DNA of 63,822 nucleotides, filler included, from Octopus bimaculoides (GCF_001194135.2; 5 parts of 5 records of this genome joined end to end with filler, not necessarily neighbours in it); one strand, 5' to 3'; shown: positions 24,979 to 52,400, numbered from the whole stretch's first letter. A program made the numbers and translations. The notes: generated from the letters alone by a model not told the origin.

Positions 24979-26064
24979 TACACATATATATATACATATA
25001 TACATATATATATAAATATATATACATATATATATAAATATATATACANNNNNNNNNNNNNNNNNNNNNNNNNNNNNNNNNNNNNNNNNNNNNNNNNNNN
25101 NNNNNNNNNNNNNNNNNNNNNNNNNNNNNNNNNNNNNNNNNNNNNNNNNNNNNNNNNNNNNNNNNNNNNNNNNNNNNNNNNNNNNNNNNNNNNNNNNNNN
25201 NNNNNNNNNNNNNNNNNNNNNNNNNNNNNNNNNNNNNNNNNNNNNNNNNNNNNNNNNNNNNNNNNNNNNNNNNNNNNNNNNNNNNNNNNNNNNNNNNNNN
25301 NNNNNNNNNNNNNNNNNNNNNNNNNNNNNNNNNNNNNNNNNNNNNNNNNNNNNNNNNNNNNNNNNNNNNNNNNNNNNNNNNNNNNNNNNNNNNNNNNNNN
25401 NNNNNNNNNNNNNNNNNNNNNNNNNNNNNNNNNNNNNNNNNNNNNNNNNNNNNNNNNNNNNNNNATATATATATATATATATATATATATACTGAAGTTG
25501 TCAGCCTTCATCCCCCAACCACTTTATTATCTCTAAACACTTTATTTTATTCTTCATTCTATTCTCTACTTTATAATCTAACCATTAAGGAGAGGAAATC
25601 GTATTTATAGTCGACTTAATTCTGTTTTTCTTTCGTCTATTTTTAATTTATGTATTTTGTATTTTGATTGTAATTGTATTTTGTCTGTCACTGTATCAAT
25701 GCTTTTAGTTTTGTCTGTAAACTGCTGGGAATGAAACATCTCTTTCGCTATGCATCATCACACCCAGTGAAATAGCAAGAGAATCTAACAAATAACTTAT
25801 TTAAACAATTACCTGAATTTTACACCTTGAATATAGCATAACTTTTCGCCTATTTACTAAGTGCGTAAGTATCTGTTGAAACAATTGTAGTGATTTTAAA
25901 TCAAAGAATGTCGTTAATTCCGTTTTCAATCGCTTATCTATTTATATAATCTCTACGGATTCTATGAAATTCCTGATATATATCCAGTAGCAGGAACATT
26001 TCCACTGTATGATCACATCAGATTGTGCCTGAACGTGAGATATCGTAGTATGTAATTCGCTTAC

Positions 26065-26307: not shown

Positions 26308-29300
26308 CTATAAGAGAAACAATATTTTTCAAACTTACTGAACCCTCGAAGAACCGAATCTAAAGCCTGGTTTCTATTTTTACTTGAATCGAAATCCTTT
26401 CTAACGTCGCTGATGACCAAATATAAGTGTGTCAATATCTTTTTCTTTTATTACCTGAAAATTATATCGCATAGTACCTAATCAATCTGAATTAATATAG
26501 TGAAAATATATTGTCAAATTAGGACGAACGACGGAGAGCAAAATAGTACCATCCAGCTACCAGACAGCTAAGTAAAATTTTTATGCATGATGAAACAGTT
26601 CACAAATGCCTGAATTTGCAGTTCCCAATCCCTTATTTAAAATGAAGGGCCCTTGTGACTTGACAGAATAAAACCGTAATCTACTTTTATGAAGTATAAA
26701 ATAAGCTCCAAGATAACAGAGTCTAAGGCTCAGTTGTAACTGTTCCTTTTCACTTACATCACTAATGCTTTATGAAGGGGAAATCACAAATTCATAATCA
26801 GTAACTCCAAAAATATCAAGTTTTCTCTACCTAAAAAAAGCAATGGAATATAGCATCTGTAAAACCTTTCATAGACGCTATAGCAGAGACATAAACGCAT
26901 TAGTTCATTCATTATTGCATTGATTTATTTTGCAAGATATAAGATAGTTATATATTTTTTAAGAAGTGGAAATTGGACGCAGAAACCAACGTACCTATAT
27001 ATTATTGGCAGTGTAGAATATATGGAATGATTTTAACGAATTATGTCTTGCTGGTTAATAACCTCTTGCTTCACACCAGTCAATAGATTTAAAACAATGT
27101 TATCACACAGTTAGTATGCTAGGATATTACCCGCATAAAAACTGTATTATTTTAATGCTGAATGTAACAAGCGATAAAATTTTTGTTATGGCGGATGCTT
27201 CCTTAAAGTATAGTTAATTCCTGTTTAGTAAGAAAAGAGCCAAACATGTTGGGTTTGATGTAATGAAACTGAAAGATCACAGGGCTGGAACGATCTTCGA
27301 GGCGTAAATGAATGGCAGGTCTGCAACCCTTAACCTTCTGGAAGATGATATAAACTCCCTGACCGACAATATCAAGGAATCACTTCAGGAGATAGCTAGA
27401 AATGCTTGGGAGAAGGAAAACGAAACCATATGTCACTGATGACATTTTAGACCTATGTGATTTAAGACGAAACCTAAGAAAGACCAAGTTAACGGGTAAG
27501 GGAGGCAAGTCAGAAATATAATGTTTTGAATAGGAAGATTGGAAAGAAAATGAAGGAAGCCAAAGAAGAATGGATAGCAGAACAGTGTAAAGTCATCTAA
27601 TCTGGGATAAGGAAGGACTACGTCAAGGATGCTCATGAAACCCTCAAAATTCTAAAGAAACAAAGAAACACACCACAACTATCACTGAGGACAAAACAGA
27701 CCTGCTCCTCATGGATGAGAATGATTTCATCAAGAGATGGTTGGTATATTGCAAAGACTTTTACAATCACAAACTCAAACATAAAGGGCAACATCCCAGA
27801 AAATTACAACAACAGTAACAAAACTTTAGGACACTTCAATTCTTCAGGAAGAAATCGAAAAAGTAGTGTGCATGCTCAGGGATTGGAAATATCTAGGAGT
27901 GGATAGTATCCCATCAGAGATTCTAAAACATGGAGAGCCAAAGATTATCAATGCGCTAACAGTTACCTGTAAAAAGATATGGTAGACGAAGCAGTTACCA
28001 AAGGAATGGACCCAATCACTGATGATACTGATTCCCAAGAATGACAGCACAAGACTAGCAGAATTATAGAACAATCAGCCTAATTAGCTATCCTAACAAA
28101 TTATTGCTTAGAGTCCTGCTAAACAGACTTAGGGGGAAGGCAGGGAAAATCCTTGCAGAAAAACAGGCTGGGTTTAGGCCCAAAAGGAGTAACATCAAGC
28201 AGATATGTCACAGACTTCTCACTGAGAAACACCTGCAGCACCAACCTGACCTTTATTACAAACGCATTGATTTCAAAAAGGTCTTTTGCCGTGTTTGGCA
28301 CGATGAGGTGTGGCAGAAGATGAAGAATTACAATTTCGACAATAACCTTATCAAAGTAACCCAAGCACTACATGAAAACTCAAGCAGTGCAGTTTTCCTG
28401 AACAACATCGAAGAATTCTTCAAGACAACAATGGATGTTTGACAAAAGTGTCTCCTGTCTCGAGCGCTTTTCAACATCTTCCTGCAAGGGACAATTCAAG
28501 GCCTCCACCCTTCTGAGGGACAGCCCATTTCTGATCTGTGCTTTGCTAATGATATTGGCCTGATAGGAAGCAGTGAAGCAGAACGACTGGAGCTCACCAC
28601 TAGACTGAAAAAAGTATCGGGGGCATACGGGATGGAGATCAACGCCAAAAAGAGTAAGATCCTGGTTAATAATGACAATCAAAAGATAGAAACCAACATA
28701 GGGCTGAATAAGAAAGACTTGACGAAGTGTACACCGTCAAGTACTTAGGATCCACTTTGACCGAGAACGGCAGATCTCGATAAGAAATAAACAAAATTCA
28801 ATTTAGCCTCTGCTGCCTCGAAGAAGCTGAATACCATAGGGGAAAAAACAATTCCATTAGTCGCTGGTGACTTCGATCGTTTTGTATGGCTGATAGAGCT
28901 AGATTCTTACAGCTAATATCGAGCGATGAATCTAGGGATTTGAGTACAAGTGCCATAGATGGCTGCTACACATCTCGTGCACAGAACACAAAACGAATAG
29001 CTTCATCAAACAGCAAGTTCTCAAACACACTGGCAGACAGAAACCACTTCTTGCACAGATAAAAAGAAAGCTTACCTAGTACGGTCATGCATCTCGCCAC
29101 AATTCTCTGTCCAAAACCATTCTTCAAGGCACAGTTGAAGGAGGGTGAAAGAGAGGTAGGCAGGGAAAATCCTGGTTTGACAACATCAAGTACCAGACAG
29201 GTCACAACACTGTGAACCTGCTACACATGATAGAGAACAGAGATCAATAGCGATGACTGACTACAAAAGCGTCTAGAGTAGCACCCCAACGACTGGTTGC

Positions 29301-32300
29301 TTCAGTTTTAGGGATCGTGATGATGATGATGTTCAGTAAACGATAGAAACTCAAAGAAAATTCTATATATGTTGTAGATAATGAATTCTACGTTGAAGTT
29401 ATTTTCTGACTTACCAAATTTGGTTAATATGAGTGGGTTGATCACATATCACTGTACTGATATGATTAATGGTGTGCCGGTGAAAGATCGGTTCAAAAGA
29501 AACTGAAATTATAAAATGATATGATTCACTATGTGATCGAACTATAATACCAGTTAAAGGATTCAGTTCAATGAATTTAGCTGATTTAGCTAACTTAGAT
29601 TAATAACGGTTACCTGGATTCAAATGATTTTCGTTGCTTTTTTGTGAACACTGTGTCCTTCGGTTTAATCAACTTCTTTGTGATATTGAAATATCTTTTC
29701 CACTTTATATTTTCGCTTCTAAATGTGGTTCTCCGAACTAAAACAGTGCGGTGTATGAATTGCATTTTTTTAAGAGTACTAAATTTATCAATGCAGAGAA
29801 AATACTTCCATTATACGTTTAATGAAAATAGGGGGCTTGTAGAATCATTAGAGAGTTGGAAAAACTGATTTCTTGCATTCCGTCTGGCATTTTACTGCCG
29901 TTGCCAAATTTGCCTTTCATCCCAACAAGGCCGATAAAATAAACTACGAGCCAAATACCTGGGTCGATATTGCTGGCCTTATGACTAAATGAGAAACAAT
30001 TATAGGTTTAACATTTGTATGTTTTTATTTGTTCATCTTAATTATGATAATGCAATACGAGTTATAGATTTACGTAAGTCTTCACACATGCATGACGCTT
30101 CTCTTTTTGCTCCAGGCAAACTTACAGTTAGTTTGCATACCACAGCCATCGGTAGCAACGATCCAAAAATCAAATGCGGTGCAGGTTACTCGCCTAAATA
30201 GAACGCGTGGGCGTAACAGAAAATTCGAGCGGCTACTGTTTTCTTCCAGGTTTTGTTTTGTCATATTTTAAGAAACATCAAAGCCAGTTTCTGAAAGTTG
30301 TCGATCTGAATCTTGAAATACTGTTTCCCACATGGTCAACTGAAACTAGTTTGCTCAATAGTAGGCGGTGACAAAAACATACACCCAGTATTCTCTAATA
30401 TGACAAACGCTGGACACATTTCTTATTAAGAACTATTATACTCAAACCACATGAAATAGGTTTTATCTGAAATACACCTAGTTATTTCGATGATGTTAAT
30501 GTAAAGATAAAGAAATTTAAATTCAAGTATAGTAGATCGCTGAAAGTGAAGTGAAAACAGAATATTTTATTATCACAAGTGCACCTGTTGCTAGTTCAAA
30601 CTTAAATTAGTTTTAAGTTGAATTCCGGTAAATACGAAGCGTATACTCACTTATGTATTGGTCAGGATCCACTGGAACAGCATTACACAAAAGAGTTCGA
30701 TTCTGAAACGAGTCCAAGTGTGTAGATTAACCAAACTTTACAGCTGTGATCGATCAAATGTGTACTGATAACGAAATAAAAATCTTACCAGCTGTGATTT
30801 AAACTTAAAATTCGGAAATTATCAATCAAATATTCATGTTACTTTAATGTTTTAAAAATTTTAACAAGTCCATCACCACATGTATGTAAATGTGCTACAT
30901 TCATGTAATAAATGTGCTAAACCCATGCTGTAGATATGCTGCATTAATGTCCTAAAAGGAGAGGGAAGGCTACAGTGGGGAGAGACGGTACATACTTGTG
31001 TCACTCTCCAAATGCCTTCTACTATTATAAGACCATAAATGGGAGGTAGATTGTGGAACAGTCATCACTTTCTCGAAGAATACATTTCATAAACGAAGTG
31101 AAATATCAACAGCCAGGAAGGAAAAAAACTATGTCGGATTAGACTCTTATTCTTAGACAAGCGCTTACCGAGATATTTGCCAAGTACGCCCGCTCCTTGT
31201 TTTATCCAGCTTAGAGGAATGAAATCTGGATTTGAACTCAGGACATAAAAAAAAACATAACTTAATACGCAAGTGTTTTGTTGTGGAGCCCTCAACCAAT
31301 TTTGCCAACATTCAATAAAATGTAGAACAATACTTGAAAGAAAATTCTAAAGAATTTACTAAGTAGCCTAGTTTCAGCTGATAATTACATTGCTAACATA
31401 ATCCATGAGAAGTTTACTGTCGAATGCTGATTGAAAATTTACTTCATATTCATTGCTTTTTTTAAGAACATTAATTATTATATATTTATATATTTACTTT
31501 TATAATATATTTATTTATATTTACTATTATTATACATTTATATGTCGACTATCATTATATATTTATATGTCGACTATCATTATATATATATATATATATA
31601 TTTACTATTGTTATATTATATATTTATATATTTATACGAAGTTGTGCTGAAAAGTTCCTAGCTTTAAAGGTATCGTGAAGGCCTCGTTGGTGACCCACCC
31701 TTCTGAGTTCTTTATAAAAGATTAGAAAAACTGAAGGGCAGCTGCTATAAGTGTGTGTGTCTGAGAGGGGAACGTGTTAAATAAAAATCATAATTAACTG
31801 ATCCTCCCGTAATTTATTTTACTCAACTCCAGGGACTTTTACTATATTTACATTGATTATATATTTATATATTTATTACTATAGTATATTTTTTTATTAT
31901 CAGTTCTGTTACATCACCAGGGATTCCATTTATGGATTCATTTGCAATGAATTCTAACTTCTAATTTCCTGATAATGAATTCTATCTTAAGATATTTCTG
32001 TAAACATCGTTTCCTTTATTCATCCTTTTTCGTGTTATCATCTCAAAAAAACTTATGTCACAGTATATAGAGCAGCATAATACAGAATTAGTATTCAAAG
32101 TTTAGAAAATGAAGATCACCATTGAAGAGCAATATGTGAGTGATAAACGTGTATGAAACGAGCTGGAGTCATACCCGTAGATGTAGTTTGCCTAGGACAC
32201 ATGCTGACGATCCGAAAAATATTAAAGACAGCTTCAAAAATCTCATGGAAATCTTCAATGCAACATACAAGATGCCGGATGAAAACAAGTTAAAATTTCT

Positions 32301-32608: not shown

Positions 32609-33306
32609 CTGCAAAAGTCGTCACAATACAACACAAACTCAACCACAGAAAAACGGCGCTGATCACCATTGTTATAGTCGGTAATTCTACTGATATTTTT
32701 TATTGTGCCAAATATTATGTATGTATTTATATATATCGGTCGGTCAAAATATTTCAAATCAAACCACAAAATAATATAAGGCGTGTTCACGTTATTAAGC
32801 TGCGTTCATATAATACTTGCTTACTGTTAATCAAATTATCATTTAAACGAATCAAATGCCTCCTCCATACATTCCTCTGTCACCTTATGCTGTTAAGCCT
32901 GCGAACAATAATTTATCAATATCTTAATTAAACACGTCCTAATACAAAGACAGACTTTTCTTTAAATCATATCTTTGTTTTGTTTTTTTTTGTTTTTTTT
33001 ATCTGAATATGCTTTTTGCAACGTTGAATAAATAGTTATGAACGTACACAAATAAAGAATTAAAATAACTATTCAGATCCATAACAAAACATTACGTAAA
33101 GCATTATGTAAAGCATGTGTCAGCCATTATATTTCACCATCATTACATTTGATTTCTAGTTTTGAAATTACTTGATATTGCAAATATGTTTACTTTAAAA
33201 TGTTTTATTTAAAAAGGAGAGAACGGCTTATTTTTCCGATTTTCTTCTATTCAAATTACTTAATTTTATTTAGCAATATCTTCGTAGTTAAACTTGTTTA
33301 CCTTTC

Positions 33307-34719
33307 AGATTCTTTTATCTAAATATCATCATCATCATTATTATCATTAATTGAAGCGGTTTAGAGGCGGTGAGGTAGCAGAACCGTTAGTACGCCGGGC
33401 AAAATGCTTAGCGGCATTTCTTAACGTTTTGAGTTCAAATTCCGCCGAGATTGATTTTTGCCTTCCATTCTTTTGGGGGTCAATAAAACAAATTTCAAGC
33501 CTTGTGCCTATAGTAGAAAGGATCATTAATTAAAGCGGCAAAGATGGTGAGCTGGAAAAAATCGCTACGGCACCATACAAAATGCTTAAAGGCATTTCTC
33601 CCGGTTCTTTATCTTCTGAGTTCAAATTTCACTGAGGTTGACTTTTCCTTTCATCCTTTCGGGTTCGAAAAACTAAGTAGCAGCTGAACACTGGGATCGA
33701 TGTAATCGACATCACCACTCTCTTAAATTTGAAATCATTACTACCATTAACTATGTTATCATTTTAATCCTTGTCCATGTGGCATAAAGCAATTTTACAT
33801 AGCATCATTTAAGTTTCCTGGTTCGCATCTTTTTTTTATATTCTGTTCAAATCCTAGCATAGCTAAACGCAAAATCTATGATCAGTAAATTCGTGTGCAA
33901 ATCATACATTTAAAATAATTTGGAAAAAAACGGATCTTATTTACAAGTTCTACTTGTCTTGCAGCTGACTTGATCTATGAACGAGTTGTGAAACCGAAGC
34001 AATTTCAATCTGGACGAGTCACTTAAAAATACCGTCTTCTCAAAAGCTATATTTCTTTATTGACTACACAAGGCCTAACATAGAGGAGACAAACAAGGGC
34101 AGACAAAACACAAGAGNNNNNNNNNNACGAAAAGAATGGTAATGATAAAGGAAAAGGTGGATCGACGTCAACTCGAAACTCCACACTCCAGATAACGTCA
34201 TTGAACATTTTTAGGAGTTTTTAAAGTTATTTCATTTTTGTCTCTTTGTCTTTGCTGTGTGTTACTTGTGTTGTATATTCAGTGTTCTTTTGTGGGGTAT
34301 CGTTTTCCTTTTTGCTGTCTGCGTTTGTAATACCGTTTGTCTGCGTTCGTGTTTGTTTTTGTGCATTCGTTTGATGAAAGGAAATGTCAACCTCAATTAA
34401 ATTTGAACTCAGAAGATAAAGAACCGGGAGAAATGCCTTTAAACATTTTGTATGGTGCCGTAACGATTCTTCCAGCTCACCATCTTTGCCGCTTTAATTA
34501 ATGATCCTTTCTACTATAGGCACAAGGCTTGAAATTTGTTTTATCGACCCCCGAAAGAATGGAAGGCAAAAATCAATCTCGGCGGAATTTGAACTCAAAA
34601 CGTTAAGAAATGCCGCTAAGCATTTTGCCCGGCGTATTAACGGTTCTGCTACCTCACCGCCTCAAACCGCTTCAATTAATGATAATAACGATGATGATGA
34701 CATTTAGATAAAAGAATCT
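33307..34719. repeat. Local inverted duplication, ~350-bp arms (33307-33655 and 34373-34719) containing two tandem S1 SINEs plus unique flank
   Basis: The arms are reverse complements with only scattered mismatches, including the non-SINE gattcttttatctaaat flank. Confidence 0.9.
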
Positions 34720-34729
34720 TTTTGCATTT

Positions 34730-35230
34730 GTTGGAAGAAGAGAACGAGAACTTTTTTCCTCTTCCTCCCTGCAACTGACCATTCTTCCTCACTTACCTCG
34801 GTAGATGTGGATGGTCCAGCTTCCTCCGGTGCACAGTCCTCGTTCTCCACTGTCTTCTCCGCCTCTTCCAGCTTCTTGTCCTCCTCACCTGGAACTTCCT
34901 CGTTCGGCTTCTCTTCTTGTTTCTTTGGTTCATCCTGTTTTTTTCCCCTTGTGCTTCAAGTTGAAGGGCCTAGAGGCACGTTTTCCTTATGTGCTCCTTC
35001 AGTCCGCACTCGAAACATCTTGGGATTCTGCCCTGGACCAAGACTCTCAGTTTTGTCTCATCCAGCAGAATTATAAATTCTGGAATTTTCTCGAATTCCG
35101 CTGGTGTGGCTTGAATTGTCGCTCGAAGACTCCCGCCACACCAGTTTTGCACTTCTTTCTCCTCGAATTCCAGCAGTGTCACCTCCTTGATATTAGAGCA
35201 AAATTTGTAAATCATAATTTTATTTGGGGA
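34730..35230 (-). mobile_element. LINE ORF1-like fragment with CCHC zinc knuckle (Tx1/L1-like)
   Basis: LRVLVQGRIPRCFECGLKEHIRKTC followed by an E/K-rich tail. Confidence 0.7.
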
Positions 35231-36211
35231 TTTTTTGAGATGTGACCGGTTTTTTTGTTTACGGTCTCTACGCTAACGTAGTAATCAATAAATCTGTCTA
35301 ATTTTCTTCGGTATATTTAATTTTATCACTTAGCTAATTAACTTTATTCTTTTGTAACTTGTTAACTATAATTTGAATGTATTCAAATGTTGATAATTTA
35401 TTCTCTATAACCTAGCAGGCTTGAATAACCTTATGAGGCTTTTTACTTATAAATACTAAATTAATATAAGGCTTTTTTAGATTATGTATACTTAAGTTGT
35501 TTATTGAGTATATTATATATAAGCATTACTTATTAGATATACTTCTATTTGACCAGGAACTTGTATTAAAAATGTATTTTTTAAATATCTAACTGTTTTT
35601 TTCTTCGGTCTGAATTTTGTATTTATGTTTATAACTCCAACGGTCCTTTTCGAAATGTACAGCGTTCCGTATTGGTTCATTACCGAACTTCATAGTCTAG
35701 CATCATAAATTTGAATCATTTGCTTGATATGTTCATGGTTTCAACAGCGTTATGATGTACGGTTGTATAACATCTCGTGTCTTTTCAACTTGTTTTTTTG
35801 CATGTTTTCATAGGTCAACTCTGAATGTTGTATATGAATGTTATCTATTTTTATTGTCTGCCTCCTACTAATAAGGCCCTGAGGAGATGCAGTATCCCAT
35901 ATTTTATAATATGCATGAATCAATCTGGATATTGCATCGAAATGATCATAGGTCATTATCATTATTATAATAAAGTATTTTCAATGGATCAGTTTTGAAC
36001 TCTCATTTAAATCGATATAAATACAAAAACTCACTTGTGAGTATTTTGCTACGTTTGTTAACAGATACAATATTTTTGCCTAATTTTGGTATAAAAATAT
36101 ATATAAATAAATACATATNNNNNNNNNNNNNNNNNNNNNNNNNNNNNNNNNNNNNNNNNNNNNNNNNNNNCATATACATACATACATATACATATACATA
36201 CATACATATAC

Positions 36212-36256
<45 letters not shown>

Positions 36257-36369
36257 CACGCATACATACATACATACATACATACACACATACATACATA
36301 CATATATAAGTATATATAAACATGTACATACATGCATACATTTACACACACATGCATGCATACACACAC

Positions 36370-36900
36370 ATAATATTGGAAATATGGAGAATGAAGAATT
36401 TGAACATTCAAACTAGGTTTATTTCTAGTTCGTTTATTCATTATAATAACCCTACATGTGTTTCGATCGCACTAACTGCATATTGTTGCGTATTCATATG
36501 CAGCGATTCATGCATTGTTAAAACGATCTCTTCAGGGCATATGGGTATGACATTATTTGAAGAGAATTTTTCCTCTGTTATTGCTTGAATTAGGCTTGGT
36601 AGTAGCAATAGAAAACCATGACTTCCTTCGATCAGATGTTTTTTTAATTGGTTATTTGGGTAGAATTCATCAGCAGTGATTGTTGAAGTTAGCAAGTGTT
36701 CTTGGTTAGGAGCGGAGGGGTCACTTAAAGAATACTTGTTTTGATTGATTCTACATACTTTATAGTCACATGGAATTTTTGATAGATTTTAGAGTTGATT
36801 ATAGCATTTAAACTTGTGATGGTTATTAATAGTAGCAGTGGATACTTACTAAGTAGCAAGAACCACGTGATTATCAAAAAGAAGTAACGAGTTATATTTT
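36370..36900 (-). pseudogene. Degenerate retroelement remnant, possibly Penelope endonuclease region
   Basis: Broken coding-like frames adjacent to the Penelope copy; motifs eroded. Confidence 0.3.
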
Positions 36901-37098
36901 AAATTCATCTTATTTTTTATTATTGTTTTATTGTGTTTTTAGGTTATATCATATAATCTTGTAAATTGAATTCTATTCTTATATTCTTTATCATTATAGT
37001 TGATATAATTATGTTTAGAGAAGAGAATTCTTTCACAGGAAACCCAGTGATGATAAGTGAAATGCTGAATGAACAGTTCAAAAGTGTCTTCATCTCAT

Positions 37099-37145
37099 CC
37101 TTACTCGCCTGGAGCCTGACAATTGCAGGCTCCAGGCGAGTAAGG
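37099..37145. repeat. Perfect 20-bp inverted repeat with 7-nt spacer
   Basis: ccttactcgcctggagcctg-acaattg-caggctccaggcgagtaagg. Confidence 0.95.
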
Positions 37146-37149
37146 TGAA

Positions 37150-38400
37150 GCCCTGTCGATTCAATGCTGGGGGATCATTTCAAAGGGCGCGAAATTTCCA
37201 CATAAAGCGGGACAAGGATGTGTTTCCCTGTCCTTACATCTGAGGTAAAGCACATCCTTGTACACTCTCCCTTGAAGATACTAGCCTTCATGCCCCTGTA
37301 TTGCCTCGTGGTGTCATCGTGAGGGTGACTCTGGAGTCTATAACCCTTGAGTGACAGGATCCTCCCATAGGGCTGCTGGTAGAGTCTCAGAAGTTGCAGG
37401 TTGGGCTGGAGGTTGTGAATGTCTGCTTGCATCTATTGTAGCCTGCGATATTAGATGCAATGTTGTGTAAACAAGCGTTGTTAGCCTTGCTATTGAATGG
37501 GTTAAAAAGCTCATAGTACTTGTGACTTCTGGGGAAATGCTTGCTTCTTGATCAACGACAGGAAGCTCCTAACTCTTTTGGTTGAAACTTCTAGGTTAAA
37601 TGGGTGGGGTTGAAATAGATTCGCTTTCTCTTTTTGGTTTTCTTTGGAATCGGGGTGGGGTTAGGTGGGGTGTCCTCCATATACGTCGAATTGTCGATGA
37701 ATCCGCTCCTCATTAACGACTCGTTGTAATGGGGGCGGCTCTATTGAATATCTCACTATCCGCTAAAAGTTTGGTGATTCTTCTTTGGTGCCTGAAACTA
37801 TGGTTCTAGTTACAGCGTGAGTGGTTGGGTCGAGTTTCAGTGGATATACACAGTTTCCTTACTGTGCTTCTTGTAAGAGTAGTACTTGCTCGTTTTCAGG
37901 TCTAGGGTTAGGCCCAGGTAGTTAACGGTTGTCAAATTAGTGGTAGCTGTTATGGATAAGCCGAAATTTTTCAAGATCTGTATCAAGTCCTTTCGCAACT
38001 TGTCCATAGCGTGGCCGTTCATATGGCTTGAGACTGCCAGGCTATCATCCCTATACAGGACTGAGCCATGAAGGTGAGTGCATTTTCTAAGGGTATCCAA
38101 AATAAATAACCCGACGAGGTCAGCGATCTCGGTCCCGTCGTAGCCCCCCGCTGGTATGTCGAGCAGTCGATCGCCTTGTTTCTTCACCCAGGTGGTATCA
38201 TCATGAACCAAGATTGGCCTCCTAACATTCATGTTGATTCTGACATTGAGGTCGCTTATATTGGTGAATTGCCTGACAAAATCTAAGGTCTTCGGGACTA
38301 GAGGCTTTGATATTAAATAGTAGAAATTCACGACGTTGAACTGAGGGAATTTGCAGACTGCTTCATTCTAGATGTCAGTCGATCACTGGAATCCCACTGG
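37150..38400 (-). mobile_element. Penelope-like element: RT plus linker/GIY-YIG region, degenerate
   Basis: DIPAGGYDGTEIADLVGLFIL, LYRDDSL, VNYLGLTLDL; downstream KHFPRSHKYYELFN and QYRGM segments. Confidence 0.85.
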
Positions 38401-38699
38401 ATCAACCCCCATGGCTCTTCTAACATTGGAGTTTATGGAGTCAATAATACACTTACTACAATGCCTATCTCCCTCCGAGAGGTGTTGATCAGCCTGCGAT
38501 TAGGGTTGGAGGGGAGGTCGAGCTATGTGAGAGATGGGGGGAATCTCGTGGTGAGGCGATCGACGTGATCTTCTATATAAAGATGGATGGCCCTTTCGTT
38601 TCAGTGTTTATGTCATTATATGTGAATGTGCTGGTTTTCCTGCGTGATTTGGAGATTATGTTTGTGAGGAGTCTTGCATACATGGATATATTTCTTTCA

Positions 38700-39470
38700 T
38701 ATATGTTCCTCTTTATTTTGTCTGCGAAGATATGTACAAGTTCAGGAGAAGTTAAGGAAAGACCTGATAAAGATCTTCAAAGCATTTGGCCTATTTATGA
38801 CAGTTATTACCAAGTTTTACATAACTTTTCTACTATGGGTTTTAAGATGACTACACAGGACTACTTGTTTTTTCGAAATTGTATAATGGATAAATGTGGT
38901 GAACGAAATTTGTTCGCTGACTTAAGCAGAAGAGACTGCACATTCGTGCAACCACTCAAAATGGATTTTCAAACCGGTGGTGGATGTGCAGACCTTTGTA
39001 CATAAAGGGCAATAGTGTTACAGGAGGCCGACAGAACTACATGCATATTAATGTTGTGCAATATGTTCTCAATAATGAATGTTAATATTCAAAGCTAGCT
39101 TTTGCTTGCAACTTCACGAAATCCCATTTTTGGCTGAGGGCCATTACTAAAAACTCTTTTGTCATAAAATAATTGTTTCTCAAACCTGAAATGTGGGCCC
39201 TTACAATATCATTCCAACTCATTTGATATTCAATAAAGCGACTTTTATCTTGAGGCAGATCAGTCTTTCCAGCATTCCTCTTTCAAGTCTCAATGATTTC
39301 TAACTAATGTCTTAAGCATTTCGTGGAAAGCTTCAAGTCTCTGTCTGACAAGAGCCATTTCTTGATTATTTCAAATTTAATTGAAGCTTTATTCACAACT
39401 TTTTTACCTGTATTTATTATTGTTGGAATAAACGTGTTAAAAGCGAAATGAACCTGTACAGGCGCCATTG
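38700..39470 (-). pseudogene. Degenerate coding-like segment, tentatively very-large-inducible-GTPase (GVIN/URG4-like) C-terminal region
   Basis: Broken frames VVNKASIKFENNQEMALVRQRLEAFHEMLK, SRFIEYQMSWNDIVRAHISGLRNNY and CPLCTKVCTSTT; similarity judged from memory only. Confidence 0.25.
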
Positions 39471-39732
39471 CAGTTTTGTGAAAAATCTATATTTACTTTT
39501 ATCACATTCTTGAGAGTTTACTCTCAGAAAATTTCATAAAATGAGACATTTTGAAATCTCAATGAAATGTTTCAGATTTAACACGGTCGCCATATTTGTA
39601 AATTTTTCCAGCTATTGGTTTTCAGGCTCATAGACAAATTTTGAACGAAAATAATACAATCAATTGCATCGACACAAGTATAAATATATTAATAAAATCT
39701 ATCTTCGACGTTGGTAGAATTTGAACTCAGAA

Positions 39733-39944
39733 TGAAACTGACACTATGTACACATGCTTAGCTAAAATTTTGAACAATGGCAGTATGAAACTGGCACTAT
39801 GTACACATGCTTAGCTAAAATTTTGAACAATGGCAGTATGAAGTTGGCACTATGTACATATGCTTATCTAAAATATTGAACAATGGCAGTATAAAATTGG
39901 CACTATGTATATATGCTTAGCTAAAATTTTGAACAATGCCAATA
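39733..39944. repeat. 53-bp minisatellite, ~4 copies
   Basis: Unit tgaaactggcactatgtacacatgcttagctaaaattttgaacaatggcagta. Confidence 0.9.
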
Positions 39945-40249
39945 TTATAAAATGCTGATTCAGTGTTTTCTCCGTTATATTGACATGAATTGATTTTGTG
40001 GTGAGAGCTTTTCATATCGAAAATAATAATCATAATGTAAGCAATTACATTTTTCAGTAGTTAAATTTTGACATTGTCTTACCTCTCCAGGATAGTATCC
40101 TTTAGCTCCATCTTTGTCACCCCTGTCCCGTACCTTCAAGGTAGTATACATTAACTCTTCTTTTGTTATCCCTGTCCCGCCTTTTTGAGATATACATTAG
40201 GCGATTTTCTGTCAATACTTTACCTCGCCATTTTATGCATGAAGTCAGC

Positions 40250-40283
40250 TATATAAGTGAGTAACTCCGCTCATCAGTCAGAC
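40250..40283 (+). promoter_or_regulatory. TATA box (TATATAAG) with Inr-like TCAGT/TCAGAC 26-30 nt downstream; putative core promoter of the precursor gene
   Basis: Spacing fits a TATA-Inr promoter. A donor AAG|gtagaa at 40348 and an acceptor ttgattgcag at 40775 link it to the signal exon. Confidence 0.55.
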
Positions 40284-40781
40284 TGTAAAGTGCCGAAACT
40301 TTGCTTCAATTCTTGAACCTTCCACTTCGCCGATTTTCTTCAAACAAGGTAGAAAAGTTGTTTTCTCTATTTTCAGATCATAGTTTGCAACTTCAGCAAT
40401 GTTTACTACTGATATTCTGAATGTTGTCTCGCATTTTTAACATTATAATGAATACTTGATTTTATATGTTACACTTGAATCTTTACATCTATTGCATAAG
40501 GTGGGATGTCTTCGTGAAAGAGGCATTCGTTCCGTTTTAGCAATCGTGTCACTGAGCTTGTTTGTTGTATTTTCAGCTATAGATTCAACAGCCTCAGTTA
40601 GTAACCTGGTAAAGAATTTTCTTTCTGATAATATTGCCATGTTGTAAAAGTAAATTACTAATCGAAATACATGAACATTTTCTAACGTCTATTCATTATA
40701 TATTGGCCCTAAATACATGATCATACAGCTGAAAGTAATTCCCTTTGTCTATAGAGGTTTATTTCTTGATTGCAGGCAAAC

Positions 40782-40827
40782 ATGCAGAAGTATTTGATTC
40801 TAGCCTGCTGCTTCCTCATTTTCAATG
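40782..40827 (+). CDS. Signal-peptide exon (MQKYLILACCFLIFN, phase 1)
   Basis: Strong acceptor 6 nt upstream of the ATG, strong donor gtgagt; basic n-region and hydrophobic h-region. Confidence 0.8.
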
Positions 40828-41277
40828 GTGAGTTAAAATCTTCATCAAAATATGATGAAAATTCATTCTTTAATATTTTTCTCGTTAGATTAGCGCATAT
40901 ATAATGTAGTGAAAGTAAGTGGCGTGTTGAATTATTGTTAGTTATGAAATTTTTAATATAATTGGAACAAGGCTTTTCACTTCAGATTCTTCTGTACATC
41001 CTTGACAATTTACATGCATCCTGCTTAATTAGTAAGGTTTGTTGGCTGTAAGCCCAGTTTCAGAAAGTGTAAATATTGAGGAATATGTTAGTTCCCAGAT
41101 ACGAACGATAACCTAATGTTAATTTTGCACACTGAGGGATTTCAAGTAAAACACTACAACTATTATACTACACTCATTAAGCGCTGAGGTAAACTTACGT
41201 ATTTAATGGTTACAAACTCTCATAACGGTGCTGGTGGTGAGAGGTGAACAATAAAGCTGCCATCTGGCATTCTTTTA

Positions 41278-41465
41278 TTCTTTTATTTGTTTCAGTCATT
41301 TGACTGCAGCCATGCTGGAGCACCACCTTTTAGTCGAAGAAATCGACCCTAGGACTTAATCTTTGTAAGCCTGGTATTTATTCTGTCGTGTCTCTTTGCC
41401 GAACCGCTAAGTTATGGGGACATAAACACATCAACATCTGTTGTCAAGCGATGGTGTAGGGGGAC
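41278..41465 (-). mobile_element. SINE family S2, 3' part
   Basis: ttcagtcatttgactgcagccatgctggagcacc...gccgaaccgctaagttatgggg; also present at 60548-60730 and 63620-63815. Confidence 0.85.
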
Positions 41466-41816
41466 AAACACACACACACACACACATGCATATATATATA
41501 TATATATATATATANNNNNNNNNNNNNNNNNNNNNNNNNNNNNNNNNNNNNNNNNNNNNNNNNNNNNNNNNNNNNNNNNNNNNNNNNNNNNNNNNNNNNN
41601 NNNNNNNNNNNNNNNNNNNNNNNNNNNNNNNNNNNNNNNNNNNNNNNNNNNNNNNNNNNNNNNNNNNNNNNNNNNNNNNNNNNNNNNNNNNNNNNNNNNN
41701 NNNNNNNNNNNNNNNNNNNNNNNNNNNNNNNNNNGCGCCATATCAAATTTTATGAAAATAGATTTTTCACAGTGGGATTGATTATGAATTCAGAATTGCT
41801 TGAGAATTCTGAAACG

Positions 41817-42050
41817 TTCTGAGCTGGCAGAAACGTTAGCGCGCCGAGCGAAATGCTTCGCGGTATTTCGTCTGCTGTTACGTTCTGAGTTCAAATTCCG
41901 CCGAGGTCGACATTGCCTTTCATCCTTTCGGTGTCGAGAAATAAAGTACTATTTATGCACTGGGGTCGATGTAATCGACTTAATGCCTTTGTCTGTCCTT
42001 GTTTGTCCCCTCTGTGTTTAGCCCCTTGTGGGCAATAAATAAATAAGAAT
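41817..42050 (+). mobile_element. SINE family S1, near full length, in the precursor gene intron
   Basis: Head, body and aataaat tail match the other S1 copies. Confidence 0.85.
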
Positions 42051-42201
42051 TGCTTGGGAATTTTTTTACTAAAATTTCAAGAGACTTGTAGTGGTTTGTA
42101 TAATCCAGCATTCTATTTATCTACAGTGCATAAAATATATAAATTTTAATCTTCCTATCAATTTTATATATCTAAACAGGTATTTATTTTTTTCTTTATA
42201 G

Positions 42202-42716
42202 CACGAAGATCTCAAGTATACAGTATAGCCTATCGCATGGATGACAGAAAATATGACCCGATTAGCGATTATATAAGTATCATACCCGATGACAAGATTA
42301 TACAAGCAGATGCCATCTATAAAAGATCAATGGAAATGAATGGCATAGATATGGGCCGGAGATCTGATATAGCTAATATACCAGCAGATGCCTACAATAA
42401 AAGATCATCAGAAATTAATGGCATAGATATGGGCCGGAGATCTAATATAGCTAATATACCAGCAGATGCCTACAATAAAAGATCATCAGAAATTAATGGC
42501 ATAGATATGGGCCGGAGATCTGATATAGCTAATATACCAGCAGATGCCTACAATAAAAGATCATCAGAAATTAATGGCATGAATATGGCCCGGAGATCCT
42601 ATATGATGAGGATAGCAGGACGGAATATGAATATACAATCCATGAATAGAATGAGAGATATTCCCTATCGTTCAGACGATATTTATATAATGCCAGCAAT
42701 AAAAGATGAAGCCTGA
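42202..42716 (+). CDS. Multi-copy peptide precursor exon (prohormone-like, with KR/RR sites and G-RR amidation signals)
   Basis: Acceptor tttttctttatag, in frame with the signal exon, giving 186 aa. It has a 78-bp (26-aa) tandem unit, SSEINGIDMGRRSDIANIPADAYNKR, about 3.4 times. AATAAA at 43160. Confidence 0.85.
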
Positions 42717-43452
42717 TGATAATGTCTATTGATACGAGGCATGCATCTTTGTGAATGATATTCTATGTCTACTATCAATACATCTCCCCTATAGATTTCC
42801 GTCAATGACAAATAACAGATTAGTGCATACAATATAACAAACAAATCATTTGTTCAAAAATAACCTTTTTGTTGAAGTACCAAAGTAAACTTTTTCTTTT
42901 TTTAATTTGCTAAGATATCTCTGCATAGCAATCAAGTATTTTTCAACTATGTTGGTTTCTCACATTATCACAAAATCTACAAATGATGAGAAGAGAAGGA
43001 AATGTGAATATTTCTTTCAACCAAGATTAAATCTCTGATTGCCTGGAGATTGCGTCTATATATCAATATGCTAACAAAAATCTATTCAAATATTTGATTT
43101 TATGTGATTTCTTAAACTAGTTTTATACAAAAATTCGTTTATAGTGGATATATTTGTTTAATAAAACACTTCTTTAATGCGCTTTTAATGTTGCGTTGTT
43201 CTTCATTTGCCTGTTTATACTTTTTATGAAGTCAAACAATATTAGAATGGTTTAGCTATCATGTTCAGGAGTACACATTGTTAAGGTTTATATCCCGACA
43301 TCACATTCGTCAAAAAGATGTCTTTGTAAACAATATCTGAAATATCATAAATTGATGTTGACACGATATAAGAGAAAAGATATCACTCAGCTTATTATGA
43401 AACGATTTCTTAAATTATGGCAGTATTAGAAATGAGTATTATTTTCTAACAG

Positions 43453-43523
43453 AAGCAGACGAAATGAGTTCTGGTGATAGCCTTGATGTGATTGTATCAT
43501 CTGCAACTATCCCCCCAAAATAT
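43453..43523 (+). CDS. Candidate exon (phase 1 to 0), (E)ADEMSSGDSLDVIVSSATIPPKY
   Basis: Good acceptor ttttctaacag and a single open frame; resembles PHM LDIRMPGVTPK. The donor is weak. Confidence 0.35.
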
Positions 43524-43759
43524 GTAGCGTTGAGTCAAGTTTTAAAATTTTTATTATTGTTTGTAATGATGATGTTGTTGCTTCTTGTAATAGACAGGAG
43601 TATGTTTTAACTTTCTTTATTATCTTATGATATTTATGGAGATATCAGAAATCTTTTTAAACCATTTTTTCTATGAATATAGTAAGAAGACTAATGGGAC
43701 AACGAAACATAACTTGCTCAAAGAGTACATAATTGAAATTCTGCCTCGTTTTCTTTTAG

Positions 43760-43801
43760 CATAAAGCTTCTATATTTATAGAAGGGACAGTAATAAAGAG
43801 G
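43760..43801 (+). CDS. Candidate small exon HKASIFIEGTVIKR (phase 0 to 0)
   Basis: Strong acceptor ttttcttttag, strong donor gtaaga, single open frame; no recognisable homology. Confidence 0.3.
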
Positions 43802-44149
43802 GTAAGAAGGAGTGAGTTGTAATTTCCACGCCATTCTCATTGATAGTTACATCGTCTGGGAAGTAACTTCCACTAGTAACAAAATAACAGCCCCAACATA
43901 TCTCGTTATTAGCTTAATTCATGATTTAGGTAGAATGCAGTTAGCGCTACTTTGCTAGAAAGAAAAAAATCATCGAGATAATTCTACATAATTTTATGCA
44001 TCAACAAACTAAATATTTTCTTTAAAATTTTCTTAATCTATTTTTCTTCACAGCTATATATATTAGTAAGTATAAGTAAAATTAATGAACACATTTGAAG
44101 AAACAGTTTCTTTCAATTAATTACTTGAGTGGGGTTTTCATTCCGATCT

Positions 44150-44410
44150 GAATCTCATGTGTACCTCACCTCCCAAAATGCCGCCTTTCTCTTCAATTAT
44201 CCAAAGACCACCGTTCATCTCATGCCACCCCATACACACCAGAATGAATATCCCCTTCAACCTAGCAAAAAGGATTTGTACTATAGCTTCTAATGCAAGC
44301 ACCAGGGACACACGACTACATGAACTAAAGGATACACTCATCCCCAGGAACTACCCACCTTAACTAATTGACATATGCTTTCAACGTTCCCTACAACTCA
44401 ACATCCACGA
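44150..44410 (+). mobile_element. Penelope-like RT C-terminal (thumb) fragment
   Basis: SCHPIHTRMNIPFNLAKRICTI...RLHELKDTLIPRNYP. Confidence 0.8.
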
Positions 44411-44636
44411 AATGTTACTGTTGTTTAACTCCAAGAACATCGTTTCTAGCTGGCTATACGACATAATATTTGTGTCCTTATATTTTCGAACTGGGAAATA
44501 ACCCAGAAACTAGTCCACAGATGTTTTGCGCTGGATGGGAGTACTGAACTCCCTGTTCCAAAATATAAGGACACAGATATTGTGTCGTATAGCCAGCTAG
44601 AAACGATGTTTCTTGGGGCTAAACAATAGTAACATC
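44411..44636. repeat. ~85-bp inverted repeat (44411-44495 and 44550-44636)
   Basis: acatcgtttctagctggctatacgac versus gtcgtatagccagctagaaacgatgt, with matching flanks. Confidence 0.9.
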
Positions 44637-46239
44637 GCTCCTTCCAGGACAGCCATATTATGTTGTCAAATAGCCTTTACTTTAAAGAACAATTACTGAA
44701 TGTCTCTCTCTGAGAGACTTAGAAATAATAACATTTCTATTTTTATGTATTTATACTTCGATTAGAGATTGTGTTAACCTCTAAAAAGATAAAAAGCTAG
44801 TCAACATTTCAACCAATTTATTCGATTGAAAGAAGTGCCAGTCCGTGGTGGATATATATGTCAAAACTAAGATACAAAGTTTGAATTACCTACGAACAAA
44901 CCAACTCATGCCAAGGGCAAAGGTTTATATTCACCTTCAAATTGTCACGACTTCTAACGGGTAACCCGAGAAATATTGACCAGCCAGTTAAATTGACGAA
45001 AAGCTCTACATAGGAATCTGGTGTATGTCAGAAAAATTAACTGACCGAGTCACTTCATTACATCCACCTGTAACTAGAAATAGAGAGGAATCTTCGATGA
45101 ACTTTACGACATCAGAAAACAAGGAATCGACGTAATCTCAAACTCCGGAAGGTCCATGAGAAACAAAACAAAAAAAAAAGACACCTCTGACTTAAATGAC
45201 AGTAGATTCTTCGGTGGGCTTCGTGTGTGAATGACGATTATTGAATGGTAGAAAAGAATTCCTCCTTTTAACACAACGACTTAATACCAGGTGGTGCAGA
45301 CAAGGTCTTTCAAGCTGTGCTGCCTGATATGAATGACCATCCACAATTGTTTGAAACCTAGAACACTCAATACACCCATGGTCCATGAGGGGTCATCAGT
45401 CCTGCCTCACCCTCCATACAAGATTTTTAAAATGTACCGAAAAGTATCCAAGAGTCTTTCTTCGAGTAATTCAGACCGACAGTGCTGGACGGCGTACATC
45501 TTTACCGTAGTTTTACGCATGGAGTCAATGCAGGACAAACCTGACAGTTAAAAGTTAGAAAGTAAATTTGGGCAATCAGTTGGTAATGGCACAGAACAAG
45601 TTGAGAAATCTTCTGAAAGCCTGCATCAGTATTGACTACTACGTCTCCAAAAAAGGAATCCTATGTTACAAAGTATCTCAATAAGGGAAGTGGCATGGCT
45701 TCATTTACTAATGGCAAAGAGCTCGATGACGGTATCAGACAAACCGCTACATATTCAGCAATGAAATAACCAGGAGTGTCTGAAGAATCGCATCCACCAA
45801 CGCCACCTAACAAAAGTCGTCTTGAGAATAAGCAGAGAGACCATAGCTCATCATTTGGCACAAACATAAGTCGTCATTAATCTGACTGATCTATCTATAT
45901 CTCCGTTAGTAAGAGGAATAAACTGTTGGTGAGTTCACAACAGAAAGTATGACTCCAAATGATTGTGCAATCAAGCAACACTTGCAACGAAAAATGTTAC
46001 TATGAGAGAAATCAACAGAAAGCTGCTGGATATTGATAATCAGAAAGAAAAAATATAAACGAATAGACACAATCACTTAGCGAAACCAACCCATGGAAGC
46101 TTGAATTATCCTTTCAGGGTCGATAAAATAAGTACCAGTCGACTAGTCCTTCCCCCCCCCCACCGAAATTGCTGGCTTTGTGCAAAAATTTGAAATCAAT
46201 ATTATTGAAACCAACTGGTTCAAAATTTGAATACCTTAA

Positions 46240-49412: not shown

Positions 49413-52400
49413 CAGGTGGGTACCGTTAATCGAAAAGTTAACTTCGTTAATCATCAATTCTTTGGAAATGTAACGGAAGTTAACGTTAATCCGTTAATGT
49501 TAACTTTCATTGGAAAAGGCATATCTGCAGTTTAATACCCCACTGAAATTTGTTGCCTCATAACTTCCAGAAAAATGGATACTTGTTAATGAAACTTTCA
49601 CCAAATAATCGTTTATATCCTGNNNNNNNNNNNNNNNNNNNNNNNNNNNNNNNNNNNNNNNNNNNNNNNNNNNNNNNNNNNNNNNNNNNNNNNNNNNNNN
49701 NNNNNNNNNNNNNNNNNNNNNNNNNNNNNNNNNNNNNNNNNNNNNNNNNNNNNNNNNNNNNNNNNNNNNNNNNNNNNNNNNNNNNNNNNNNNNNNNNNNN
49801 NNNNNNNNNNNNNNNNNNNNNNNNNNNNNNNNNNNNNNNNNNNNNNNNNNNNNNNNNNNNNNNNNNNNNNNNNNNNNNNNNNNNNNNNNNNNNNNNNNNN
49901 NNNNNNNNNCGTTTGACGGGGATTTTTTCCGGTGTTTTTCACCAAAGTCTTCAGAATGATGGGAAGCATCTTTTCTCGAAAAAAACGAAAAAAGTTTTGG
50001 AAATTTTTTTCCATTCCCTCACCACCCCAGTCCAAAACTATCTGTTGGCCATTTTTGTCTTTTCACTACTAACTTAAAACCCGTGGGAGAAACATAAGTT
50101 CAGCGGAAAAGTTCAGAGGATTTAAGGGAGATCTGACTGCTGTTTCTAACACATCCCAAAACCTCCCTCCTCGGTTCTTTCTCACTCACACATCTATTGA
50201 TATTTTTCAATATTTTTCTCCCCATAAACAAATTTTATGGAATAATGATGTCAAAGTAACACACTTGTAGTCCCAACTGAGTGAGGCCATGTTATGTGTG
50301 TGTAAGAAAAAAAACACACCCCAAAACATCTTTAGTGTTCATATTAATCTGTCAAATGTAATACTTATTTGTTTACGTTATTTGAATTACTCAGGTTTAT
50401 TTGCTCGTAACTTTGTAACATTTTACATACAGATTTGAAATTTTGTCAGTGGGTGCTTTATACACCACTAGTTTATTATGTAATTTTAGCTAATCTTGCT
50501 GAGTAAATTTGAGTTTTATGGGCAGGTAAATTTAATTAACAGGTGTAAAAGCAATAACATTATGGATAAACACTAAAATTGAAATTCTTAATGCATCTTA
50601 CCTGTTTGATTTGTTACTAAAATTATCGCAGATGACAACCGACAAAAATTTTGCCACTCTTCAAGATGAGGTACTTCAATTTTAATTAATTAAAATACAG
50701 GTATAATCGGTACAAGATTTTATTCTTTCGGTAAATATTTCGTACCTCGGTGTGGAATAATTTTTTCCACAGTTTTTTTTTTCTTTTTTTTCGGGTGCAT
50801 TCANNNNNNNNNNNNNNNNNNNNNNNNNNNNNNNNNNNNNNNNNNNNNNNNNNNNNNNNNNNNNNNNNNNNNNNNNNNNNNNNNNNNNNNNNNNNNNNNN
50901 NNNNNNNNNNNNNNNNNNNNNNNNNNNNNNNNNNNNNNNNNNNNNNNNNNNNNNNNNNNNNNNNNNNNNNNNNNNNNNNNNNNNNNNNNNNNNNNNNNNN
51001 NNNNNNNNNNNNNNNNNNNNNNNNNNNNNNNNNNNNNNNNNNNNNNNNNNNNNNNNNNNNNNNNNNNNNNNNNNNNNNNNNNNNNNNNNNNNNNNNNNNN
51101 NNNNNNNNNNNNNNNNNNNNNNNNNNNNNNNNNNNNNNNNNNNNNNNNNNNNNNNNNNNNNNNNNNNNNNNNNNNNNNNNNNNNNNNNNNNNNNNNNNNN
51201 NNNNNNNNNNNNNNNNNNNNNNNNNNNNNNNNNNNNNNNNNNNNNNNNNNNNNNNNNNNNNNNNNNNNNNNNNNNNNNNNNNNNNNNNNNNNNNNNNNNN
51301 NNNNNNNNNNNNNNNNNNNNNNNNNNNNNNNNNNNNNNNNNNNNNNNNNNNNNNNNNNNNNNNNNNNNNNNNNNNNNNNNNNNNNNNNNNNNNNNNNNNN
51401 NNNNNNNNNNNNNNNNNNNNNNNNNNNNNNNNNNNNNNNNNNNNNNNNNNNNNNNNNNNNNNNNNNNNNNNNNNNNNNNNNNNNNNNNNNNNNNNNNNNN
51501 NNNNNNNNNNNNNNNNNNNNNNNNNNNNNNNNNNNNNNNNNNNNNNNNNNNNNNNNNNNNNNNNNNNNNNNNTTTTTGCCAAGAGTAAAAAATTGCTGAT
51601 TTTATGGTTTTAAATTTCAAAGAGCGGACTGATTTCATAGTATTGGCCCATTTTTTAAGGTTTTTAAAGGCTTTTAGAGCCAGAAAAGGGGGGGGGGACC
51701 TCAAATGAAACACAATATTAGTGTTAAACTAGAAAAGGTTTATTGATACAGTGGCCGTAAAAGAAAAAAATTAAATTTAAAAAATGAAAAACACGATATA
51801 TACATAACTTAATTTTTCCTCTTCTCCATTTTGTTGATGAGATTCATGTTGCCCTTCATGAAAATTAACATACTAAAATTTTCATCAGACATAGACGATC
51901 TCTTGACACTTAATATGTTCTTGGCCATGGAATATAAACGTTCAATTGCAGCACTGTAAGTAAATCTTTGGAGAAGGCAGCAGCTGTCAATAGATCTTTG
52001 GAGTGGGTCTCCAACCAGGTCTTTCCTAAATTCTGGGCCTTGTCCTTCAGTAACCTGTGGCTTCCGCTCTCATTTTGTTGGGTGACACCGCTGAAGTAGT
52101 CATCTTCCACGTCTTCGTTGTTGCTGCCTCCACTGTTGCTGCTCACTTCCTTAGACTGCTACCTCATGGCCTCCTCGACCTTATCCGCCATGTTTCTCCT
52201 CACCTTGGTGAACTTGGTGCTATCATATCTATCCAACCAGATAAGGCGAAACCTGGGGTGGAAGGCAGCAGCCAGCTGGCATTCCTCATCGTCCAGGAAG
52301 GTCGCAAATCTTTTGTCGATGCCTGCCAAAACTGCGTCGACCAAGGGGCTGCAGCAGAAGAGTTTTGGATTAACGGACTTGAGTTAACGGAAGCAAATGT

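Follow-up and report, generated by a model that had tools for sequence, protein, structure and literature searches.

No route to C-terminally amidated peptides other than PHM is known to us, and the mechanism by which its two coppers act is under debate. In rat, the PHM core comprises PAM residues ~45-356 (PDB 1PHM, 1OPM) and is preceded by a secretory signal, and the monofunctional PHMs of arthropods (PHMm) have a length of 345-350 aa (PMC6669573). A PHM-like protein of the amphioxus Branchiostoma floridae (345 aa) is composed of a signal peptide followed by the catalytic domain. In the mollusc Lymnaea stagnalis, a PAM zymogen carries four PHM domains and one PAL domain, the copies being reported as isoenzymes (cited in PMC6669573). 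Here, a PHM-like block of five exons from Octopus bimaculoides is described, which maps to the minus strand of CM046609.1 at ~59.299-59.306 Mb. It lies in a window of 63,822 nucleotides (the whole stretch of DNA, filler included), of which the piece 24430-52494 (28 kb) was analysed; all positions are given in window numbering, and addition of 59,273,257 yields the record coordinate on CM046609.1. The piece is eukaryotic DNA of ~35% GC with microsatellites, N gaps and transposon open reading frames (ORFs). Exons 1-4 of the block are intact and exon 5 is degenerate. The block is derived from a PHM gene via a genomic, intron-retaining duplication, and it may well be, at slightly less than even confidence, a retained coding unit, either as a PHM paralogue with impaired catalysis or as an alternative 5' cassette.

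The spliced product of the block (114-125 aa) matched all rat PHM structures with an E value of 8.7e-8, query residues 22-115 being aligned to chain positions 17-109, which are rat residues ~61-153 in the full-length chain 5WM0. With a profile built from 91 PHM homologues, it reached 58.6 bits over profile positions 27-136. The peptide of exons 2 and 3 was weakly PHM-like by itself (E 0.06 against PDB sequences; 15.4 bits, E 0.022, against Pfam PF01082). Compared with the rat core, the block is collinear from ALDIRMPG to LPKG and keeps the F.P and A..LP motifs. A six-frame profile scan of the 28-kb piece recovered the four collinear exons as its sole PHM-like matches, so that a second PHM copy within the piece was rejected. 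Two weak look-alikes at ~40.9 kb and ~39.7 kb were also discarded, being exon 1 of a neighbouring peptide gene and noise, respectively.

Exon 1 (32669-32562, minus strand as for all following exons) starts with an ATG in the context acaATGG and encodes the signal-peptide-like MVISAVFLWLSLCCIVTTFA followed by DTKTIDINIPNYVWDG (rat equivalent ..ALDIRMPGVTPKQSD), that is, a 20-residue signal-like segment and 16 residues that already align to the PHM core. It ends at the phase 0 donor ggt/GTAAGT (a slash marks the splice junction), which corresponds to junction J1 of amphioxus PHM. The same exon is present at position 1888-1781 of the public-assembly locus CM046609.1:59,304,039-59,325,973. Exon 2 (30702-30651; acceptor tcgtttcag) encodes NRTLLCNAVPVDPDQYI with the Leu that replaces Y79 (30693-30691), C81 (30687-30685) and an N-R-T sequon, and its donor taa/GTGAGT lies in phase 1 at amphioxus J2. 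Exon 3 (29502-29415; acceptor ttataatttcag) encodes (I)SFEPIFHRHTINHISTVICDQPTHINQI(W), which includes the changes H107 to Asn, M109 to Ile and G113 to Ile as well as H108, C114 and W124, and is followed by the phase 2 donor ttg/GTAAGT at amphioxus J3. Exon 4 (26307-26213; acceptor ttgtttctcttatag) encodes (W)ECGQQNYVCGNGEYQILWAMSKDAPGWHLPK with C126, C131, the replacements of Y139 by Trp and of W141 by Met, and the conserved A..LPK, and terminates at the phase 1 donor aag/GTAACA, equivalent to amphioxus J4 (LPK/D). A read-through of exon 4 (..LPKGNTKHILSIHF) as the strand carrying H172 was considered and rejected in favour of this conserved phase 1 junction after LPK. The four introns measure 1859, 1148, 3107 and 101 nt; the third (26308-29414) harbors LINE-type reverse-transcriptase ORFs on the opposite strand at ~27.4-29.3 kb. 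With a simple donor matrix the donors of exons 1-4 scored 2.0-4.0, and the acceptors of exons 2-4 are preceded by pyrimidine tracts. Spliced together, exons 1-4 encode 114 aa with the ATG, the ORF and all GT-AG splice sites intact.

The junctions of the Branchiostoma floridae PHM could be solved exactly and read ..SPEK/HDTYLC (phase 0), ..PSYI/(V)GFEP (phase 1), ..KDL/(W)NCGE (phase 2) and ..LPK/(D)VGF (phase 1). All four intron positions and phases (0, 1, 2, 1) are identical between the block and this gene, and the fifth junction differs. Since these positions and phases are equal to those of amphioxus PHM, the exon model is settled, and the origin of the block is a duplication of a PHM gene at the genomic level and not a retroposition. 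A processed pseudogene was therefore rejected, the four introns being retained at ancestral positions. An assignment to the other branch of the family was also considered. DBH, MOXD1 and tyramine beta-hydroxylase belong to the same two-domain copper fold family and carry a DOMON domain before the catalytic core. In contrast to these proteins, the block has no N-terminal DOMON, its PHM-type IDI.IP strand begins within four residues of the signal peptide, and it shows the PHM intron pattern.

The earlier note on this DNA had placed a PHM-like protein at 29415-30702 and had proposed that its disulfide scaffold is kept while residues of the active site are altered. Its limits are those of exons 2 and 3, exon 2 starting at 30702 and exon 3 ending at 29415. 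The cysteines equivalent to C81, C114, C126 and C131 and the Trp preceding C126 are indeed all present, but C126 and C131 lie outside this range, in exon 4 (26307-26213). All four cysteines fall in aligned columns, and the N-domain disulfides C81-C126 and C114-C131 are predicted from the sequence. The spacing between C126 and C131 is C-x6-C in the block and C-x4-C in rat PHM, and the block has no equivalent of C47.

At the CuH site, both replacements that had been noted were borne out. The motif TVHHM reads TINHI, encoded by 29473-29459 with the Asn codon AAT at 29467-29465 and the His codon CAT at 29464-29462, and TYFC reads TLLC, encoded by 30696-30685. From the F of DFKP through C114 the block aligns to 18 consecutive profile match columns without a gap, and the assignment of Asn to H107 and of the following His to H108 is therefore unambiguous; the alignment brings no different His into the ligand position. 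The H107 column holds His in 104 of 105 homologues, whereas the block has Asn; the H108 column holds His in all 105, and this residue is retained. Tyr is found at Y79 in 98 of 99 homologues (Leu in the block), Gly at G113 in 103/104 (Ile), Tyr at Y139 in 102/106 (Trp), Trp at W141 in 104/106 (Met), and the Met of IRMPG in 89/97 (Ile). Further, the hydrophobic MLLF that follows HH is ISTV in the block. Relative to rat PHM the differences are thus H107/Asn, Y79/Leu, G113/Ile, MLLF/ISTV and ILYAW/ILWAM. Among the 19 columns with at least 90% conservation, 13 are kept and 6 are replaced, the latter being clustered on and after the HH strand. The residues kept are C81, C114, C126, C131, W124, H108, three prolines, the LPK motif, and the F, A and L-P of conserved motifs.

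A sequencing or assembly error in an otherwise normal PHM, with CAT (His) as the true codon, was weighed against this pattern. The H107 change hangs on a single base (AAT versus CAT), and the public-assembly locus, being 100% identical to the window with the same N gaps, is no independent check of it. However, five further near-invariant positions differ, each by separate changes, and a single wrong base cannot explain the divergence because these other residues have changed too. With an overall identity of 27% and the lack of recognition by Pfam, correction of one base would leave no normal PHM either, which makes this explanation very improbable.

The divergence extends over the whole block, whose identity to other PHMs was 27% on average and 37% at most, compared to 45% for PHMs among themselves. 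Together with the kept cysteines, and with a Pfam-grade N-domain in the annotated gene at this locus that is more than these exons could supply (see below), this upholds the view of a PHM-type paralogue. No sequence closer to the block than ~52 bits was present in two homologue sets (264 proteins in total), and among the best 150 of 4930 matches to a profile of seven slow-evolving PHMs none was nearer than ~52 bits. A scan of metagenomes found no relatives of the block, and the 96-aa ORF surrounding exon 4 gave no record in an exact look-up. A word-index search with the spliced 125 aa returned no match and was uninformative, long targets apparently not being returned.

The N-R-T glycosylation sequon of exon 2 (30702-30694, minus strand) is located two residues before the Y79 equivalent, beside the former copper site; the rat sequence reads S-D-T at this place.

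The functional weight of the H site is known from mutants of PHM. The variants H107A, H108A and H172A retained at most ~5% activity while still binding two Cu in solution, and any two His can hold Cu(I) (PMC12164859). Alanine mutants of H107, H108 or H172 were also described as inactive, with CuH absent in the crystals (PMC6123673). These data qualify the premise of the earlier note that the three histidines bind CuH and are needed for activity. By analogy, H107N alone predicts a severely impaired enzyme, which is not necessarily copper-free or fully dead. Since H-site mutants keep no more than ~5% activity, and Asn107 is accompanied by Leu79 and a rebuilt strand after HH, a poor hydroxylase is expected; judged from these mutants, a protein with the three changes should fold, be secreted and be at best a very poor hydroxylase.

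The pattern of residues suggests that the block was maintained as coding sequence under a selection that, at the electron-transfer copper site, had become weaker or taken another direction. The encoded protein would be secreted and adopt the N-terminal beta-sandwich of PHM, stapled by C81-C126 and C114-C131. The CuH site would offer at most two His, and the mutant data suggest that copper may stay with a hydroxylase turnover of a few percent or less. Such a product may be a pseudoenzyme, with peptide or copper binding or regulation as conceivable roles. If this reading is true, a naturally retained copy whose electron-transfer site has been remodelled would offer a direct means of probing the purpose of the H site, and a case of pseudoenzyme evolution in an animal rich in neuropeptides.

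Alternatively, the protein could still be an active enzyme with altered chemistry, in which the mode of binding of copper or another metal is altered by an H site composed of Asn, His and His or Glu, or electrons take another route, and glycine-extended or other substrates are hydroxylated. The retention of H108, the presence of an H172-equivalent His in a long reading of exon 5, and the ability of single H-site mutants to bind two coppers, with any two His holding Cu(I), are compatible with such an enzyme. A natural parallel is the Sycon ciliatum PAM A-like protein (XP_065187707.1), a sponge protein which has D-H in place of H107-H108 and Ser at Y79, with H172, H242, H244 and M314 intact; Asp thus occurs at position 107 with every other ligand in place. 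Yet all tested H-site variants lose at least 95% of their activity, and in the block Y79 and the strand that follows HH (MLLFGC to ISTVIC) have changed as well. We consider an active enzyme of this kind unlikely.

Another protein with replaced ligands, a PAM-like protein of 1116 aa from a Logan assembly of the public read archive, carries a first PHM-like domain in which QQ, FF and V occupy the ligand sites and all six ligands are lost, followed by a canonical PHM and a PAL domain. Like the block, the Sycon and Logan proteins keep the cysteine scaffold and have copper ligands replaced. Neither of them is a close relative of the block (~20 bits), and the losses are therefore independent. In the literature no experimental characterisation of the Sycon or the Logan protein was found. 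The monofunctional invertebrate PHMs, in contrast, keep every copper ligand.

To weigh whether the block has been maintained as coding sequence, neutral substitution was simulated on the coding sequence of exons 1-4 and the splice dinucleotides, with indels ignored. At 0.2 substitutions per site ~36% of the residues were changed, which is comparable to the loss of 6 of 19 near-invariant columns. The ORF and the ATG survived in 4.6% of the neutral runs, and the ORF, the ATG, the 7 splice dinucleotides and the 4 Cys jointly survived in 0.065%. This argues that most of the divergence was built up while the block was kept as coding sequence, the recent past not being covered.

These values bear on the possibility that the block is a dead or dying partial duplicate, in which exons 1-5 were copied, now sit in intron 1 or the 5' part of the annotated PHM gene and belong to no productive mRNA, H107N and the other changes being decay. 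In such a case, the 114 codons without stop or frameshift, the intact ATG, the seven of seven splice dinucleotides of exons 1-4 and the four Cys would have to be explained, since an equal neutral divergence brings loss of the ORF in more than 95% of the simulated runs. The losses are also concentrated around the copper site and not evenly spread. In contrast, six near-invariant residues are gone, exon 5 is degenerate with a weak acceptor and without the conserved donor, later exons were not found within the piece, and the block is not a protein-coding gene of its own in the NCBI-derived table. A recent death after a long functional life is possible. To a dead duplicate we assign a sizeable probability, well below even.

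The evidence from exon 5 deserves separate consideration. The exon-5-like stretch (26111-26050, minus strand) follows exon 4 in frame after 101 nt, has the weak acceptor ccagaaag/TT and encodes VGYRYRCHTFINVEALVSELH. Its ORF VGYRYRCHTFINVEALVSELHTT... was aligned by the profile to vGFkVGgdt..eikyLVLqvH (canonical VGF[KR]VGG....YLVLQVH), with a His equivalent to H172 at 26052-26050. This His is included only if the ORF is read beyond the sole good donor, ttg/GTAAGC at 26064 in phase 0, which cuts before it. The stretch adds less than 2 bits to the profile score and has no statistical support by itself; tentatively, it is a relic or aberrant exon. No exon encoding the CuM domain (the C-domain, with H242, H244 and M314 and the substrate-binding R240, Y318 and N316) was found within 24430-52494, the gene extending beyond the low edge of the piece.

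Several observations weigh against a retained coding unit. The exon-5-like stretch lacks a donor at the conserved phase 1 position and its acceptor is poor. No exon 6 or later PHM exon was recognisable from 26064 to the edge of the piece at 24430, a region that includes a 416-N gap, and this fits a truncated duplicate. Exon 1 is situated within the public-assembly locus, yet the NCBI-derived annotation assigns it to no separate protein-coding gene. The gathering score of Pfam PF01082 (Cu2_monooxygen), 30 bits, was not reached: the check proposed in the earlier note gave at most 15.4 bits, and constructs of 94, 125 and 146 aa had no match. If canonical exons 1-4 are located between the block and the exons to be shared, exon 4 of the block would be awkward to splice productively. 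Finally, the simulation speaks to past constraint and not to present function.

The annotation of the public assembly places the block inside the range of a PHM gene. The locus CM046609.1:59,304,039-59,325,973 is identical base for base to the window from 30782 on (30782-52716), including the N gaps. There, a minus-strand gene is annotated by NCBI over both locus ends, whose 314-aa product has Cu2_monooxygen and Cu2_monoox_C matches (E ≤1e-5) and is of the monofunctional invertebrate PHM type. Since the range of this gene overruns both ends of the locus, one of its exons lies more than 20 kb upstream of the ATG of the block. No 314-aa protein was among the matches listed in the search with the profile of seven slow-evolving PHMs. 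Exons 1-5 of the block together gave no Pfam match, in comparison to 66 bits for amphioxus exons 1-4 and 25 bits for amphioxus exon 5 alone; the same region of amphioxus PHM scored 65.7-103.7 bits on PF01082, and monofunctional invertebrate PHMs score 66-104 bits where the block stays at 15 bits or below. As the block exons yield no Pfam match, the 314-aa product must use a canonical exon 5 outside the piece, and probably a canonical N-domain too. Exon 5 is thereby present twice, because the annotated product must have its canonical exon 5 elsewhere, and the existence of a further exon 5 in degenerate form speaks for a duplication of exons 1-5 as one block.

Two arrangements would account for this: either exons 1-4 splice to exons outside the piece, or the block as a whole is an additional copy, missing from the annotation, that is situated within the range of the annotated gene. 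A sum of 114 aa and ~200 aa gives 314 aa, which is compatible with the former. In that arrangement the phase 1 donor of exon 4 would be spliced to a canonical-type exon 5 and to exons of the CuM domain outside the piece, and the partner exons may belong to the PHM gene for the 314-aa product that is annotated across the locus. In its most specific form, a second octopus PHM 5' unit under selection, with its own promoter, start and signal peptide, would replace the N-domain of a monofunctional PHM by one deficient in the copper site (Asn107, Leu79), the CuM half being shared, and would lie in one locus with a nested precursor gene of repeat peptides that end in Gly-Arg-Arg; this particular arrangement is improbable in our estimate. 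If true, it would constitute a natural one-copper or electron-transfer-crippled isoform, which binds glycine-extended peptides without amidation or uses another reductant. If the block is no more than a decaying duplicate, its main relevance is for annotation, as its four clean exons could be merged into, or mistaken for, the neighbouring PHM model.

Lymnaea stagnalis offers a likeness in being a mollusc with PHM-coding units multiplied in one locus. The Lymnaea copies are whole domains in one frame, whereas the octopus block has its own ATG and signal peptide, comprises the first half-domain within the piece and carries an altered copper site. In Octopus sinensis, CM016868.1 is collinear from 5,581,323 with window positions 32735-44740 at 81-92% DNA identity, a stretch of 10,124 nt being paired with 32735-40905. 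The O. sinensis sequence that was compared ends 66 bp short of exon 1, and an orthologous PHM-like block, if present, would begin just beyond it. At the syntenic O. sinensis loci no gene spanning the locus, as the annotated 314-aa PHM gene does in O. bimaculoides, was present.

Besides the block, a two-exon gene was observed on the plus strand of the piece. LOC128248729 (186 aa, 'uncharacterized') occupies 40782-40827 and 42203-42716, antisense inside the annotated PHM gene range and ~8 kb from exon 1 of the block; the ORF at 42203-42716 (plus strand) is 100% identical to LOC128248729 of O. bimaculoides. The protein has a signal peptide, MQKYLILACCFLIFNA, followed by a 78-nt in-frame tandem repeat at 42299-42598 (3.8 copies, 94% matches), the units of which read KR-SSEINGIDMG-RR and are separated by SDIANIPADAYN. 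A Gly that precedes a dibasic pair is the classic signal for amidation. The O. sinensis counterpart of this gene is 42% identical and occurs as two tandem copies. Elsewhere in the piece, another reverse-transcriptase-like ORF (..LYRDDSLAV..) lies on the minus strand at 37840-38367, and an ORF at the upper end of the piece (52162-52383, minus strand; ..AAFHPRFRLIWLDRY..) resembles the ends of hAT-type transposases.

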